From Bugula neritina (taxonomy: Eukaryota; Animalia; Bryozoa): a stretch of DNA of 64,000 nt. The DNA lies in assembly GCA_964035545.1 (NCBI GenBank), contig OZ037773.1, forward strand, positions 9,763,751 to 9,827,750, given 5' to 3'. Under the pieces are notes generated by a model that had not been told where the DNA came from, made no database searches, and saw only the letters and a list, made by a program, of their open reading frames with translations. The translations under genes were made by a program, and so were the position numbers. Of this stretch, positions 418-61,913 are shown piece by piece (within the stretch, counting starts at the first letter, position 1; every line of letters begins with the position of its first letter).

Positions 418-585
418 CTGCATTACTTCTAAGAACAGCATTGCATTCGAAAGGAAAGTTTCTCCAGCAGTTGACCAGACACTCTGTGAGACTTCTAGTT
501 GGTGACTTTCTGGTTATAAGAGGATTCTTAGTGTTGAGGTACTTGTCTTTTGATATACTGACTGAGTTCCCACACTCTGGTAAAT
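418..585 (-). CDS. PAN/apple-like exon of a fourth (partial) paralog 'D' of the secreted PAN + 3xCTHRC1-C family; gene continues off the left edge
   Basis: 168-nt exon (tatag|AT...GCAG|gtaag) encoding DLPECGNSVSISKDKYLNTKNPLITRKSPTRSLTECLVNCWRNFPFECNAVLRSNAG; same length, phase and Cys pattern as the second coding exon of paralogs A, B, C. Its signal-peptide exon was not resolved. Confidence 0.8.
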
Positions 586-1030
586 CTATAACAAACTTTC
601 TAACATTATACAATATAATGTTTGGTTTACTAAAAACTGCGGCTTTAGTTATATAATGGTTTTTTTTTCAGAACTGGTAGGTTTAAAACATATATATTGT
701 TATGCCAGTAGTTTGTATATAAAGAAGATAACGCAAGACTTAGTAAAATAATAATATATTCAATTACCACACAATATTAAAACATAAACATGCAGATTTA
801 TAACAGCAATTGCAACTCTATAAAACAAACAAAAGTTATGCTTAATATGTTAAATATGATGAGGCTTAGTAAATTATTAAATTTTTATTTCAAATACCAG
901 AAAATAAAGATCAATAAATCTAATTATATAATTTGATTAAAGTTAGACATCTTTTCACAAGAAAACAAACCAAAAACTTTTACAATCAGAAAGTATTGAT
1001 TTCGAAAGTTATATTAAATGAAATATAAGG

Positions 1031-57200: not shown

Positions 57201-60200
57201 TCTTTATTGTAGATGAGCAGCTTTCTTCCTGCCCTCTACTCAACGTGTTTAACTACAAGTATGAGACTTGGAATGAAGAAGTTAACCAGACAGCTGACCT
57301 TCACACAAGAGATATTCTTATCAAAGTGAGTAAACAATAGTGTTCCTCAACTAAATTGAGTGACTTCCACTTAAGTATCAAGCAAATTAAATTATTTGTA
57401 CATTTGCTTGAACGTTTTCTGCATAAAATTCATGCAGTAAAATCTACTTGCTATAAAAGAATTAAATTTGGTCTGAATTTAACGAGCAACCTTTATAGTT
57501 TAATTAAAACTTCTATTTATATTTAACACTACAACATGATACAAAAAATCATTTACGTGATGTAGCTCCATTTTTATAACAGCAGAATGGTGGTTTTGCA
57601 ACAATATAATAATCAAAGAAGGTATACGATCATAGAAACTCTAATTGTTTATATAGTAATTCAATTTGAGAACTTATAGTTGCACATTATAGTTATAGCT
57701 ATTAGATTTTTTTGTTAATTACATCTTAGGAGCCTTTTCTACATAAAACCTCTGACAAAATAATAATTTTAAAAATATATTCTTTCATAACAACAAAGAA
57801 GTTTGTCCTGATTCACTGAAAGTTTTGAAAGTGCTAAAATAAATGTATGATCATGCTTTTAGCAACGATACCAATGAGATTATTTTGTGTAATAAAAACA
57901 TGTTAATATACTCAAGAGCTTATGAAAGCATGCAGTCTTTAAACTTTATAATATAAAAATACTTTCATTAAATGCAAATCTTGCTTAGGCTTGCTATATA
58001 TATATATATATATATATATATATATATATATATATATATATATATATATATATATATATATATATATATATATATATATATATATATATATATATATATA
58101 TATATATATATATATATATATATATAGGCGCTTATAAGTTGTTGAAAGCTTTAAGCAATGACAATGATTAATTGATGTAATAAATTATGTAATATTCAGA
58201 AACAAAGAACTCATTTAAATACTAAAAAAGAACTATAGTATTATCTAATAGTATATATCACATGTAGGGTTAGTGTTATAGTGTAATATAGCATGGTAGA
58301 AGCAGCAACAAAATACTTTACAGGCTGGCAGCCTTTTGATAGGATTTTGCACAACCTTATATAGGATATGTTTGCTCAATCCAATTAAGTGCTTTTATTA
58401 ATAAGAAAAGTAGTTTTTTATTGTTTTTTCCTATTTTAAAGCTATCATATACTAAGTTTTCCAAATATATTCTTTGAATGGGTTTATATATAGGCCTATT
58501 TCCAGATATTTGATCTTGATCGCACACAATAAAATAATGATAAAACCGATAGTTTTTTTGTGTAAACAAGTAGTATCTATCTAGGGAGTTGACTATGTCA
58601 AGGTCGCAGATGACACTAGCCTGAGGATTAAGTACAGTGCACTGACAGCTGTCCTTATCACAACCAATGAAACATGGAACTACTGTGCAAGATGGTAGGT
58701 TATACAACATATCATATAGCTATTTTATATGAAATCTATCTCAAAGTCCACATTTAAAGTATACATATCGTTTTTTCAGTATTTTCCAACTCATTTAAGT
58801 CATGAAACATATATTATACGCTTAAAATAATTAGACATTTGATTTTTAAACTTTTGCAAATTTTACAAGTATAAAATGACTGCATGCTGCTTCCTCTCAT
58901 GTATATTCTTAAAAACTTGATAACTACATGTATCTATAAATTAAATGTAATTTTCGGATAATTTAAACCCAAATTCAAAATATTCTTATTAACATCATAA
59001 TAAAAATTTTGCTAACAACTTTCTATAATTGTGATTTCAAAAGCATATAAAAGTAATTAAATCTCAAAATTGAAAAAAATCTGCATTCTTATTAATCAAA
59101 AAGCAATTAAAATTTTTGAGACTCGAAATATTTTAATAAAAGTAAACTGACACTCATTATTATATATTATTGTTTCTCTGTTCATAATTATTGAATTATT
59201 TTAATTCACCAATACTCAAAGAAAATAATATTAAGGACATAATTATCTTTATTGATATATTGAATATACTATAAAGTAGAATATATTCATTTTGTTACTC
59301 CGGCAGGTTTGTGAAGATAGCAGACACTGAGTGTTCTCCTGTAATGGATTACATCATAGCTTTTGAATCATCAGAAGCCTATGCACATGTAAGAGATCAC
59401 AGAAGGGTGAGAACTCGTAAGTATAGCAGAAGCTTTTAGTGAAAGCTTTTTACTACTAACAATAGTGTTAAACTATGCCATGGGTATACAGATCTATAAA
59501 TGTGCTTTCATTGAATTATTGTGTGCTGTGAAATTTTAGAATGATAAAGGAAATTTTTTGAAATTAAACATTTTCTTGAAAAAATTTAGAGTAATGATTT
59601 AAGCAATAAGCGATCAGAACTTCTGGCTTTTATTTAACATATTTAGAAAAAAAACTACTCACCAATGTTTCAAACCAGTCTAAATATTGTGTACAATAAC
59701 AAAACTCATGTAATTTTATAGTCACCATTCTTGTAAGAAACCCCCGGCCTGATAAAAAGGGTTTTTGCTAAATCATGCCAAGAACTTATTCAAATGAGGC
59801 ACAGGAGCAATTATGACTGGATGCTCTTCCTATAGTCTTTGTTCTGGTTCGAACCCATGACTAAGGGGTTAATAAGCAAACTCTCTAACCTCTCGACCAT
59901 GGCTGCTCCCTTGAATTTTCGAGTAAAATATTATTGTGTATTAAATGACCTGCATAAATTTTATTGTTAGTGGAAGGAATATGTGACAACACTTTGCCTA
60001 AAGGTACTCACAAGATTCGGATTTATGTTGGAAGATGTAATGGTGATTATAGTCAACCAACCAAAACTGTTACTGGTGGATTCAACTCTCCTTCACGTCT
60101 GCACATTGAAGAAGTGAGAAGAGACCATGCAGTTGATGGAGGTGACTCAGAACTTTTATTTACCAACTAATAAATCTCTACACGGATATAATCTTTTAAT

Positions 60201-61913
60201 TAGAAGAAAGCTGAATAATTTAAAATTAACATCTTATTTTGCAAATTTGGGTAGAAGAAATTTTAATAAATTCCTAAATTTTTGTTATTAATTTTTAGTA
60301 AAAACAATTTTTTTTAATTTAGGTATATGCCTTATTTTTCTACTTATAAATTTTCTTCATTAATGGTTCCTTAAAATTATTTATAGGACATTAAATAATG
60401 ACGTAAACATTGTGAATAATTATTGATATATACTTATTTTCTCCAGTAATATCCCGTAACCAGAAGATGTTCAGAAGTCACAGTGGTAATCTGGAGAGAT
60501 TCCATTACTGGGCAAGTAATAAAGATGATGATGTGGAAGATCTGTACACCATAACTTATGTGAAGGAGTATGCAGACACTGGACTTAGACTCACTGCTAG
60601 TGGAGACCATAAAGTATTGTTTAACCGCAGTGCTGACTCTTTCTCAATTGCACGGTGGTAAGACTGATTTCTGGTTCGCATGTGAGTGTACATTTAAATT
60701 GAGAAAGTCAATGAGACTAGGTAATTTAGAAACTATATTTTGCTCAGATTCAGAGGACCACGTCATACTCATTGAAATAGCATCATGCAGATTAATAAGG
60801 AAACAGTATTGCTTAAATGAATTCTGTAGCCGAATGAGCTTACAACCAATATACACATTGTGGTTGAGGCAATGGTATGGAATCTGTTTACTATAGGTTT
60901 ACTAACATAGCACACTGCTATATGCTAAAGCCTTTGTTTGTATTGCAATTTTTATTTTTGTGCAGGTACTTCAAGATAGATGATTCTGAGTGTACATCGC
61001 CTGGAACAATAGATGGATTCATGTATTTTAACCACTATGTCGATATGCATTTACCAATGCAAGGTAGCTCATTTTGTATTTTCATACTTATATAATTGTT
61101 TAATCTGAATTTTATTTTTATAGCTCAAAATAATTTTCGGTTTTATAATTTTGCTAAATTTTAATTTTTAACTGTATAATTCGTTTTTCTATGTGTCGGT
61201 AAAAAACTGAAAAACTTAGAGAATTTGAATGATATTCAAAGGTATATAACATTTGAGTTTTTTGCATGTTTTTATACACATAAAGCTATGCAACTCACAT
61301 ATTTAGGTTATGGTAATGACTATTAATTGATCGGTATATTTAAACAAGCTAGATTACTACATCTTAACATATCAGGAGTTCATATTTAGTTTAATATATC
61401 AGGGTGATTTGACAACTTAGCTCAATTCCAGTTTTAATTTCTGCTGTGCATATATAAAGAGATATAACACATTATTATCGCAAGTGCACTGTTTAAACCA
61501 AATACTAAACAATACATTATATATATCATTGTAAGTATTTGAGTTTTGTGGGCTATTGGGAAAAGGCACAAGTGTATATAAGGATGCTTCTTTACAAATA
61601 TTCCGCATATACTCTTGACACTATAATGTCTTCAGAGCTTTTTTAGTAGCTCTAGCTTTTCCTCAACACAAATTGCTTTTAAAGCACAACTTTAGTTTTT
61701 ATATTTATTGTTTCAGTGAGTGGAGTTTGCCACGGGATATCAACAGGTACTCACACCATTACCTACGCAGTTGGCAAAGTTGATGGCTTAGACAATTCTA
61801 ATGCTTTCACTGGCTGGGAGTCGTCCTTCCACATTTTTGTCGAAGAGTTGAGAGTAGACCTTGTAGAGATATGCATCTCTATGAATTATGAACTTGCGAA
61901 CTGTAGCAACTGA
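51250..61913 (+). CDS. Secreted protein paralog C (~638 aa): signal peptide, PAN/apple-like domain, Cys-rich module, 3 tandem CTHRC1 C-terminal-like domains
   Basis: 14 coding exons: 51250-51337, 52388-52555, 53705-53805, 54596-54686, 55275-55375, 55778-55976, 56136-56294 (GC donor), 57213-57325, 58585-58694, 59307-59416, 59971-60141, 60447-60657, 60966-61063, 61717-61913 (1917 nt, in frame). N-term [29 protein letters not shown]. Confidence 0.85.
52961..53067 (-). mobile_element. Degenerate copy of tRNA-derived SINE family 1
   Basis: aaataattgccccca..attcaaacc...gtgcgcta...ggc..ctgggt.aact aligns with 22765-22856. Confidence 0.45.
56420..56946 (-). mobile_element. Penelope-like (Naiad-type) 3' fragment, second subfamily, in an intron of paralog C
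   Basis: 56946-56764 encodes [60 protein letters not shown], homologous to the C-terminus of the 16282 ORF; hammerhead in 3' UTR; ends at (TA)n 56342-56419. Confidence 0.85.
56474..56518 (-). ncRNA. Minimal type I hammerhead ribozyme motif
   Basis: ACAC-CTGAGGA-GTGCAG ttta CTGCAC-GAAA-CTATATA-GTC-GTGT; palindromic ACTATATAGT stem III, GUC triplet. Confidence 0.8.
56944..57054 (+). mobile_element. ~115-bp hammerhead-containing non-autonomous element (copy 3, 5' hairpin decayed)
   Basis: tatgctttagta...aaggtgtgggccatggtactctgttctgtgctgatgaggggacaaatcccgaaacagctgctgtccacagattgag then (TA)n. Confidence 0.8.
57003..57049 (+). ncRNA. Minimal type I hammerhead ribozyme motif (sense to paralog C pre-mRNA)
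   Basis: As 12536-12582 with stem II GGGG/TCCC (one G-U wobble). Confidence 0.8.
57995..58126. repeat. (TA)n microsatellite
   Basis: Direct inspection. Confidence 0.95.
59716..59910 (-). mobile_element. tRNA-derived SINE, family 2
   Basis: A-box-like TGGTCGAGAGG, B-box GGGTTCGAACC, 29-bp block ggaagagcatccagtcataattgctcctg identical to the 3911-4110 copy. Confidence 0.7.

Follow-up and report, generated by a model that had tools for sequence, protein, structure and literature searches.

The 64,000-nucleotide stretch of Bugula neritina DNA analysed here (the window) carries three complete and intact 14-exon paralogs, A, B and C, together with exons 1 and 2 of a fourth, D; the family to which all four belong numbers about 35–38 loci in the genome. 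Their predicted products begin with a putative signal peptide, followed by a PAN/apple-like module, then a small six-cysteine module and then three full CTHRC1_C domains (PF25815). As a whole, the family of about 35 loci is probably best explained as collagen-less secreted proteins that carry a single-chain C1q-like head and have a soluble binding role. The product of each gene would be secreted, weigh about 70 kDa and have no collagen stalk, and its three C1q/TNF-like jelly rolls most likely pack around a pseudo-threefold axis, as models of homologs suggest. The outcome would be a single asymmetric C1q-like head with its parts covalently joined, the counterpart of a head for which canonical CTHRC1 or C1q needs three chains and a collagen helix to hold them. 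By analogy, head and PAN module may together act as a soluble extracellular binder, whether lectin-like, in pattern recognition or in adhesion, with gene expansion supplying variants that differ in their loop surfaces.

Gene structure and domain content

Exons were located by self-comparison of stop-free segments in six frames and by enumeration of splice sites. All 39 introns of A, B and C are GT..AG, one frame is open across the 14 exons of each gene, and the intron phase series 1,1,0,1,0,1,1,0,2,1,1,2,1 is common to the three, with near-identical exon lengths. The first-pass annotation had described four paralogs of one shared exon and phase structure, which agrees with these models and with the two exons of D that lie in the window. 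It had also called the complete genes intact, which they are, but its lengths of 628–638 aa give way to 627 aa for A, 624 or 628 aa for B and 630 aa for C.

Paralog A occupies 4641..14272 on the minus strand, with exons at 14203-14272, 13021-13188, 11511-11611, 10483-10573, 10189-10289, 9527-9725, 8870-9025, 8242-8351, 7194-7303, 6998-7107, 6576-6749, 5913-6120, 5479-5576 and 4641-4828. Exon 1 (14203..14272) encodes a putative signal peptide with a hydrophobic N-terminus conserved with that of C exon 1; exons 2–4 (10483..13188) encode the PAN/apple-like module (exons 2–3) and the six-cysteine linker module (exon 4). A local HMM trained on members of the family places CTHRC1_C domain 1 at residues 155-289 (exons 5–7, 8870..10289; E 9e-35), domain 2 at residues 305-456 (exons 8–11, 6576..8351; E 2e-27) and domain 3, followed by a Cys-containing tail, at residues 475-612 (exons 12–14, 4641..6120; E 9e-42). 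Paralog B, at 21891..32437 on the plus strand, has exons at 21891-21963, 22506-22673, 24480-24580, 24812-24902, 25081-25181, 26665-26863, 27256-27405, 28140-28252, 28725-28831, 29501-29610, 29737-29907, 30910-31108, 31607-31704 and 32244-32437, and its three domains score E 6e-42, 9e-31 and 4e-42 with the local HMM; its longer product results if an alternative exon-1 donor at 21975 is used. Paralog C, also on the plus strand (51262..61913), has exons at 51262-51337, 52388-52555, 53705-53805, 54596-54686, 55275-55375, 55778-55976, 56136-56282, 57213-57325, 58585-58694, 59307-59416, 59971-60141, 60447-60657, 60966-61063 and 61717-61913. Its domains were found both by Pfam on the exons and by the local HMM, at 55275..56282 (exons 5–7; E 2e-29), 57213..60141 (exons 8–11; E 3e-30) and 60447..61913 (exons 12–14; E 4e-42), and in the third of them one conserved cysteine pair is replaced at both positions. 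Paralog D, on the minus strand, is partial because it is cut by the window edge. Its exon 1 (1233..1296) encodes a putative signal peptide, MALLIIWLCTLSLHVALTSVL, and its PAN-like exon 2 lies at about 416..592, ends that are the limits of a tblastn match and not splice sites; the rest of the gene is left of the window (G000:C9:9756300-9764166), where the remaining exons are stop-free in 8.4 kb. A tandem array of GTAAGT-containing units follows D exon 1.

Exon 1 encodes a short hydrophobic N-terminus in all four paralogs. Pfam CTHRC1_C matches the separate exons at positions of the profile that agree from exon to exon; taken alone, the final exon of C reaches 40.8 bits, above the PF25815 gathering score of 27 bits, and other exons reach 18–27 bits. 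With the local HMM three complete domains are recovered in each protein, at 89–137 bits each (E 1e-27 to 1e-42) and covering positions 2-135 of 135, and on these matches they belong to PF25815. In a Pfam scan of window exons and homologs CTHRC1_C was the only family on these domains, with no assignment to gC1q or TNF. The N-terminal module shows an ECxxxC...C...C cysteine pattern and weak sequence matches to MIC4. Pfam found no PAN domain on A's own PAN exon, and PAN_3 on the orthologous exon of C stays below threshold (E 0.11); a profile of the N-terminal part of Lingula-type homologs matches the window proteins at 23–25 bits with cysteines aligned, including A residues 40-145 at 25 bits with cysteine positions kept. 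Linkers between domains are 12–18 residues long and contain extra cysteines. No Gly-X-Y run of at least four occurs in any frame inside the gene spans, and none of at least three in the A, B and C proteins. The profiles thus uphold the combination of a PAN-like module and three CTHRC1_C domains in one predicted chain that had been read from the sequence, and the absence of collagen noted at the same time is confirmed.

Protein identity is 69.5% between A and C, 53.0% between A and B and 52.9% between B and C, from which it follows that the three are genuine paralogs rather than duplicates created by the assembly. Pairwise dN/dS is 0.29–0.35 and shows no sign of diversifying selection among the three, and dS is 0.58 for A-C and about 1.3 for A-B and B-C; they are therefore old duplicates retained under purifying selection. 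Within each gene the domain units are flanked by phase-1 introns and have intron positions in common, a pattern that fits internal triplication of a mobile extracellular module.

Distribution in the genome and in other animals

Of the 106 domain-terminal exons detected in the genome, 96 are grouped as 32 same-strand triplets, and the others form four pairs and two singles. The loci occur in tandem clusters, and PAN exons lie directly upstream of a triplet in 20 of 20 cases. No collagen-stalked CTHRC1 form was seen beside any CTHRC1_C domain in the genome.

BLASTP aligns A residues 7-611 collinearly with residues 13-599 of Lingula anatina LOC106162620 (P0002; E 5e-44), to which the window proteins also correspond in domain envelopes and linker lengths. 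P0002 passes the Pfam cut-offs for PAN_1 and for three CTHRC1_C domains (252 bits for CTHRC1_C), and PAN_1 scores 22.8–26.0 bits in P0002, P0016 and P0152, over the 21.4 cut-off. In P0016 the same architecture is encoded by a single uninterrupted ORF on a 2.6-kb transcript-like contig of a public sequencing run, so that it forms one open frame in another organism. The Lingula proteins LOC106162620, LOC106180315 and LOC106178942 (P0002, P0151 and P0152) and P0016 resemble the window proteins in length (594–611 aa) and, aligned collinearly, in the order of signal peptide, PAN, six-cysteine module and three CTHRC1_C domains, but are only about 25% identical to them and lack their Cys-containing C-terminal tail. 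On this collinearity the window genes belong to an unnamed, LOC106162620-like lophophorate family of PAN + 3 x CTHRC1_C proteins. The first-pass annotation had read the local expansion as a sign of a lineage-specific extracellular recognition, defence or matrix system; the architecture is not confined to one lineage, being present in Lingula above Pfam cut-offs and in the unrelated contig P0016. That the architecture was unrecognised is true in part. The family shared by bryozoan and brachiopod is uncharacterised so far, but collagen-less CTHRC1-domain proteins of Lingula and Phoronis are footnoted, though not described, in the portions of Leclere et al. (2020) consulted, and a mussel protein with three tandem gC1q domains is on record (PMC5519582, in part).

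CTHRC1 sensu stricto, according to the same portions of Leclere et al. (2020), has a signal peptide, a short (Gly-X-Y)n region and then one C-terminal domain. The window proteins share with it the domain family PF25815 and a predicted secretion, whereas they lack the Gly-X-Y helix, carry three domains in place of one and have PAN and Cys-rich modules ahead of them; they are not orthologs of CTHRC1. In a domain tree the window-type domains stand apart from single-domain CTHRC1-like sequences (SH-aLRT 97). A tree in which the bryozoan domains all form one clade is not rejected by an AU test (p 0.38), and differentiation of positions 1, 2 and 3 before the brachiopod split is therefore not established.

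A predicted single-chain head

Work on CTHRC1 has dealt almost solely with its part in vertebrate matrix and cancer, and we found no solved structure of the CTHRC1 C-terminal domain, nor any sequence match of the CTHRC1_C part to a solved C1q/TNF chain. A published model gives the domain a C1q-like jelly-roll fold and a trimeric assembly (PMC7058181, in the text available). AlphaFold models of P0002 and P0016 (pTM 0.69 and 0.74; mean pLDDT 69–71), homologs about 25% identical to the window proteins and predicted from input alignments of 7–9 sequences, both have engineered single-chain trimers as their best structural matches (Z 21–25.6 over 334–352 residues, rmsd 3.3–3.9 Å). The top matches are 5hkj and 5hzf (C1q head), 4dou (adiponectin), 5kca (Cbln1) and 4zch (APRIL-BAFF-BAFF), and the next structural match falls to Z 8. 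In both models the three domains superpose as one unit on these trimers, which supports the packing that the first-pass annotation had proposed as a single-chain pseudo-trimer; the fact that the domain comes almost always in threes in this genome points the same way, although the low identity of the modelled homologs to the window proteins tempers the claim. Trimer-like packing may be a preference of AlphaFold, whose training data are rich in trimers of this type.

In engineered single-chain trimers (5hkj, 5hzf, 4dou, 4zch) three jelly rolls per chain form one trimer-like head, but these are man-made fusions of naturally separate chains, only 6–10% identical to the homolog models. The window family would be their natural version. 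Taken singly, domains of the homolog models resemble the TNF-like lectins BC2L-C-Nt and PLTL (Z 6.5–7.1). The PAN part of the models matches the apple domains of kallikrein and factor XI and the galactose-binding PAN lectin SML-2 (Z 7–8), and its predicted fold is that of plasma kallikrein and factor XI apple domains, the HGF N domain and the apicomplexan microneme lectins SML-2 and MIC4. The window differs from these PAN/apple systems in that its exons alone stay under Pfam thresholds.

Exactly three domains per chain, without collagen, in a conserved invertebrate family would amount to independent evolutionary evidence for the domain as a trimer. The family may also supply a construct that is monomeric by nature and can be expressed, with which the CTHRC1_C fold could be solved, and it suggests an alternative route to a C1q-like head in which the three positions are free to diverge separately.

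Possible roles and alternative readings

The secreted-protein biology of bryozoans and brachiopods is little known, and the size of the family, with 32 triplets here and several Lingula paralogs, points to an unexplored extracellular repertoire in both. A binding role is suggested by analogy with collagen-less proteins such as mussel HcC1qDC6, which has exactly three tandem gC1q domains and binds bacteria, LPS and peptidoglycan (PMC5519582, in the text available, where a search did not return the term 'trimer'). Bivalve multi-gC1q proteins and CTRP4, with two tandem C1q domains, are secreted, collagen-less tandem arrays of C1q-type jelly rolls, as the window proteins are predicted to be. The bivalve proteins, however, have bona fide gC1q domains and no PAN module, whereas those of the window combine CTHRC1_C with a PAN-like module. 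A bolder version, which we regard as rather doubtful, would see a natural single-chain C1q/TNF trimer, an obligate three-in-one head with non-equivalent positions, fused to a PAN lectin module and expanded to about 35 loci as an unrecognised soluble recognition repertoire of lophophorates, innate-immune or self/non-self, that replaces collagen-stalked CTHRC1 there.

The fold may be as predicted and the job another. It is possible, if on balance not likely, that these proteins are matrix or signalling modulators like vertebrate CTHRC1, or components of the bryozoan and brachiopod body wall or skeleton. Vertebrate CTHRC1 is a Wnt/PCP co-factor with a part in TGF-beta signalling and collagen deposition, and bryozoans, brachiopods and phoronids, all lophophorates, make secreted cuticles, tubes or shells. 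Such a job would agree with a distribution in bryozoan, brachiopod and, by the footnote in Leclere et al. (2020), phoronid, with a dN/dS of about 0.3 that carries no diversifying signature, and with the characterised members of the domain family, which act solely in matrix remodelling and signalling in the accessible text of PMC7058181. Against this, about 35 loci in tandem clusters and a PAN module with lectins among its nearest structural matches would be more typical of recognition repertoires, of which bivalve C1qDC proteins are an example (PMC6835236 and PMC5519582, both in part), and we continue to favour a soluble binder.

The domains are unlikely to be beads on a string that trimerise with other chains into oligomers or an extracellular lattice. 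Collagen VIII and X NC1 heads do nucleate networks, and cysteines in the C-terminal tail and linkers could make intermolecular disulfides. In canonical C1q-like heads the trimer forms between chains (Leclere et al. 2020, portions consulted), and intramolecular packing is here an AlphaFold prediction. The two independent single-chain models are nevertheless compact (Z about 25 to single-chain trimers), and the strict triplet rule is predicted by a three-in-one unit, whereas a string could have any number of domains. In the C1q/TNF fold both chain ends sit at the base, next to each other, and the linkers of the window proteins are long enough to join neighbouring protomers. These points favour the single covalent head.

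It is very improbable that the 14 exons of a unit are shared out among several genes, such as one for PAN and others that are CTHRC1-like: the models were built from DNA alone, but their phase series is identical in three paralogs diverged to a dS of about 1.3, the frame stays open over 14 exons, no other start or signal peptide lies ahead of a domain unit, and the Lingula models and the single-ORF contig P0016 have the full architecture. The sole sequencing run found for the organism is unrecorded as RNA; 60% of the words from a largely intronic stretch occur in it, so that it evidently consists of genomic DNA. A Bugula neritina model in the database, P0005, has only two domains and might seem to argue for separate genes, but its ortholog in the genome has three domain-terminal exons, and P0005 is therefore probably incomplete. 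Every PAN exon in the genome precedes exactly three domain-terminal exons.

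Gene structure and domain content

Our analysis establishes A, B and C as intact genes for probably secreted proteins in which three CTHRC1 C-terminal domains follow a PAN-like module in one predicted chain. The stop-free six-frame segments of the window were translated and compared with one another, which yielded three sets of 13 conserved segments in collinear order (4.6-13.2 kb, minus strand; 22.5-32.4 kb, plus; 52.3-61.9 kb, plus) and a lone PAN-like segment at 392-667 (minus). Exon limits were set among the GT donors and AG acceptors listed around the ends of conservation, with the signal-peptide exon sought upstream and one diverged exon of copy B sought separately. 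The resulting models A (4641-14272, minus), B (21891-32437, plus) and C (51262-61913, plus) have 14 exons each, GT..AG borders in 39 of 39 introns and an identical succession of intron phases (1,1,0,1,0,1,1,0,2,1,1,2,1). They encode 627, 624 (628 with an alternative donor) and 630 residues respectively, their exon lengths differ by multiples of three only, and the proteins are 69.5% (A-C), 53.0% (A-B) and 52.9% (B-C) identical. D, on the minus strand, has its signal-peptide exon (1233-1296) and PAN exon (about 416-592) inside the window. Across 8.4 kb beyond the left edge, tblastn matches 11 of the 12 remaining exons, none with a stop, and leaves exon 3 undetected. D is therefore partial because the window edge cuts it, and the first-pass annotation, which described three complete paralogs of common 14-exon structure and an incomplete fourth, was right in all essentials. 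A search for RNA-type sequencing runs with C exons 9-14 gave one match, a run without an RNA record. The query is mostly intron and 60% of its words occur in this run, which is therefore genomic DNA.

Matches of the 137-position Pfam model CTHRC1_C (PF25815) to the exons of C agree with one another in model coordinates: 27-81 in exon 6, 95-126 in exon 7, 96-136 in exon 11, 1-50 in exon 12, 57-81 in exon 13 and 94-137 in exon 14, the last exon by itself reaching 40.8 bits, where the cut-off is 27. An HMM built locally from family members found by a large protein search, and applied to the spliced proteins, recovers three complete domains per protein for A, B and C (HMM positions 2-135 of 135, E 1e-27 to 1e-42), so that the three domains per chain originally read from the sequence are borne out by both approaches. 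The absence of collagen holds equally: no Gly-X-Y run of three or more occurs in the three proteins and none of four or more in any reading frame across the A, B and C gene spans, which indicates that the helix is truly missing rather than hidden in an unrecognised exon. The PAN-like assignment is upheld in part. The N-terminal 120 residues carry an ECxxxC...C...C pattern followed by a six-cysteine module, and a profile of homolog N-termini scores 23-25 bits against the window proteins with the cysteines aligned, but on single exons Pfam is below threshold or silent (PAN_3, E 0.11 at best).

The introns preceding exons 5, 8 and 12 are of phase 1 in all three genes, which makes each domain unit a symmetrical 1-1 module. 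Within the units, a phase-1 intron precedes the (V/L)xG(I/T/V)C strand in units 1, 2 and 3, a phase-2 intron follows the CxRW motif in units 2 and 3, and a phase-0 intron precedes the (K/E)VxYxK strand in units 1 and 2. These shared positions are what internal triplication of an intron-bearing unit, with later intron loss, would leave. The domains are joined by linkers of 12-18 residues, and four cysteines are conserved in each domain. Copy C lacks the first and fourth of these in its domain 3 (60447-61913), where they are replaced (CxRW to IARW, GKC to GKV), both being retained in A and B. This coupled loss suggests that the two cysteines pair as a disulfide that is dispensable in copy C.

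Relatives, predicted fold and possible function

A profile of nine domain-terminal exons (the last exon of each CTHRC1_C domain) was searched against 1.84 billion representative proteins and gave 429 matches; among the best-scoring, most of the long proteins have several domains. P0002, a protein of the brachiopod Lingula anatina (LOC106162620, 603 residues), and P0016, from a transcript-like contig (611 residues), share the layout of the window proteins, and PAN_1 exceeds the Pfam cut-offs alongside three CTHRC1_C stretches in P0002, P0016 and P0152. Residues 7 to 611 of A align with P0002 (E 5e-44, 25% identity), and L. anatina has at least five paralogs of this type. P0016 is encoded by an uninterrupted ORF of 1836 nt within a 2.6-kb contig from a public sequencing run; for a member of an intron-rich gene family, this is consistent with a spliced mRNA. 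The lineage-specific system proposed at first is thus not private to this lineage, since the full architecture is also found in a brachiopod. Homolog searches with P0002, a second alignment (A2) and P0005 in a length-windowed word index yielded nothing beyond proteins of Lingula and the query itself, and did not extend to bryozoan relatives. P0005, the named protein nearest to the family, is a B. neritina 'CTHRC1' (KAF6026444.1) with two domains. Its counterpart at G000:C9:10206087-10211090 is 81-85% identical and has three domain-terminal exons, so the database model probably lacks the middle domain.

With the family profile as query, a search of solved structures left the CTHRC1_C part without a match and gave only weak PAN matches. 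AlphaFold2 models were made of the homologs P0002 and P0016 in place of the window proteins, from shallow alignments. The best Foldseek matches to the whole P0002 model (seven-sequence alignment, mean pLDDT 68.6, pTM 0.69) are engineered single-chain trimers, namely the C1q globular head (5hkj, 5hzf), adiponectin (4dou), a Cbln1 trimer construct (5kca) and APRIL-BAFF-BAFF (4zch). In VIA-align these superpose on model residues 166-601 with Z 23.1-25.6 over 334-345 residues (rmsd 3.3-3.7 A), the next unrelated structure being at Z 8. The independent P0016 model (pLDDT 70.5, pTM 0.74) gives Z 21.0-24.7 over 342-352 residues at 3.4-3.9 A. As the superposition spans the trimer in both models, the predicted arrangement of the three domains is a single C1q/TNF-like head. 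The pseudo-threefold packing anticipated in the first-pass annotation is accordingly supported by models of the homologs, and for the family we regard it as probable and the prediction as well supported. Single domains of the models are in addition similar to the TNF-like lectins BC2L-C-Nt and PLTL, and the PAN part of the models resembles kallikrein and factor XI apple domains as well as the PAN lectin SML-2 (Z 7-8).

Leclere et al. 2020 (PMC7058181) define Cthrc1 by a signal peptide, Gly-X-Y repeats and a C-terminal domain, and model the latter as a C1q-like, trimer-capable jelly roll; term searches of that text find neither a PAN fusion nor tandem domains described. A literature search on CTHRC1 together with PAN domain and tandem found nothing relevant. 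What is known already includes the domain family itself, characterised tandem-C1q analogues, and the architecture as 'uncharacterized protein' entries in public databases, to which one paper alludes in a footnote. The family of PAN plus three CTHRC1_C domains appears not to have been described as such before. Structural evidence that suggests it to be a natural single-chain C1q-like trimer appears likewise to be new.

The freshwater-mussel protein HcC1qDC6 carries three gC1q domains in tandem and no collagen, is induced by bacteria, and binds bacteria, LPS and peptidoglycan through its domains (PMC5519582). It belongs to a sister fold family and shares with the present family a collagen-less chain with three tandem domains, for which the models predict a jelly-roll fold here. 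By analogy with this bivalve precedent, and from the combination of a predicted secreted C1q-like head with a PAN module and the expansion in tandem clusters, we infer that the proteins may act in soluble binding or recognition. A matrix, signalling or skeletal role is a tentative alternative for which vertebrate CTHRC1 offers the precedent, and the same three features favour binding or recognition over it.

Occurrence of the domain in threes

In the 216-Mb assembly, where the window is G000:C9:9763751-9827750, the profile detects 106 domain-terminal exons, all but one of them stop-free. By position they group as 32 triplets, each on a single strand, with four pairs and two isolated exons besides. 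One isolated exon may be the third member of an adjacent pair. The other, at G000:C9:10237249, was considered as a canonical collagen-bearing CTHRC1 and rejected, as it carries a stop codon and has no Gly-X-Y neighbour in the 20 kb scanned. CTHRC1_C thus occurs almost solely in threes in this genome, a rule that appears to be new. Such near-exclusive threes are predicted by a three-in-one folding unit and not by a freely repeating module. Domains arranged as beads on a string, or as a network former, are consequently an unlikely alternative, from which the trimer-wide superposition of the homolog models also leads away. In other organisms the domain is found in further numbers: a dinoflagellate cluster (P0067, Symbiodinium) has 3 to 8 or more in tandem, and a sponge protein (P0006, Oscarella) has a collagen stretch, four CTHRC1_C domains and an FN2 domain. 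Bacterial P0003 and P0015, from JGI metagenomes, end in exactly three after a long repeat region.

The predicted single-chain pseudo-trimer would be joined to a PAN module at many of these loci. The PAN exon of C has 20 counterparts in the genome (ten on contig C9, eight on C5, one each on C6 and C3), each just upstream of one triplet, and a 120-kb region around the window contains seven of the PAN-plus-triplet genes. Three triplets at G000:C3:26057528-26131092 are spaced by about 34 kb and have identical scores; they represent either a very recent segmental triplication of a triple-domain gene or an assembly repeat. With the C PAN exon as query, these triplets showed no accompanying PAN exon of the type seen in the window.

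Paralog history and other elements of the window

Pairwise dN/dS is 0.35 for A-C, 0.29 for A-B and 0.30 for B-C, with dS of 0.58, 1.35 and 1.28, respectively. A, B and C are old duplicates under purifying selection and not decaying copies. Diversifying selection was set aside, as the pairwise comparison shows no signal: dN/dS is 0.23-0.41 wherever a region could be estimated, apart from 0.04 in the cysteine linker of A-C. In a quick maximum-likelihood tree the domains group by position 1, 2 or 3 far better than under label shuffles, with weak deep supports, and the bacterial domains nest within the PAN-family clade, also with weak support. The idea that domains 1, 2 and 3 are each orthologous to the Lingula domain at the same position was dropped as a conclusion, since an AU test does not reject a single clade of all bryozoan domains (p 0.38).

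Exons 3 and 4 of A and C, which are inverted relative to each other, are 98% (11511-11611 and 53705-53805) and 93% (10483-10573 and 54596-54686) identical in DNA, against 68-87% in the other exons. The pattern resembles that of a gene-conversion tract extending over the latter half of the PAN module and the cysteine-rich module. A and C are sisters outside exons 7 and 12. In exon 12 (B 30910-31108) B-C identity exceeds that of A-C (79.8% and 75.8%), and in exon 7 (B 27256-27405) A-B exceeds A-C (78.7% and 68.8%), so the paralogs are of mosaic ancestry.

Long (TA)n arrays lie in most introns of A, B and C. Intron 6 of A (within 8829-9782, minus) is an almost pure (TA)n-type microsatellite that is open in the exon frame, so that exons 6 and 7 read through as an ORF of 318 residues. 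Directly downstream of the D exon 1 donor, tandem units of about 21-24 nt (1038-1246, minus), most of which hold CTGGGTAAGTGT, provide a succession of potential 5' splice sites. A short interspersed repeat has four copies (12466-12862, 15527-15832, 22720-22954 and 56900-57337), with 83-100% peptide identity when their frames are compared and each adjoined by a (TA)n tract; several lie in or beside paralog introns.

An inverted duplication at 16059-18365, with arms mostly 97-100% identical (87% in the weakest segment pair), is probably a transposable element. It encloses a 434-residue ORF (16282-17586, minus) that has no Pfam match, with a partial mirror copy at 17246-18115 (plus) and a 59-residue relative at 56767-56949. 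Between B and C a GC-richer block (42136-47759, 37-42% against about 30%) contains an exon (42136-42354) that has no Pfam match but looks thrombospondin-type-1-like by its WxxW...C motif, and an ankyrin-repeat gene (46919-47176, minus; Ank_4, E 1e-18). After C, a Fringe-like glycosyltransferase gene begins at 62754-63089 (E 1e-7).
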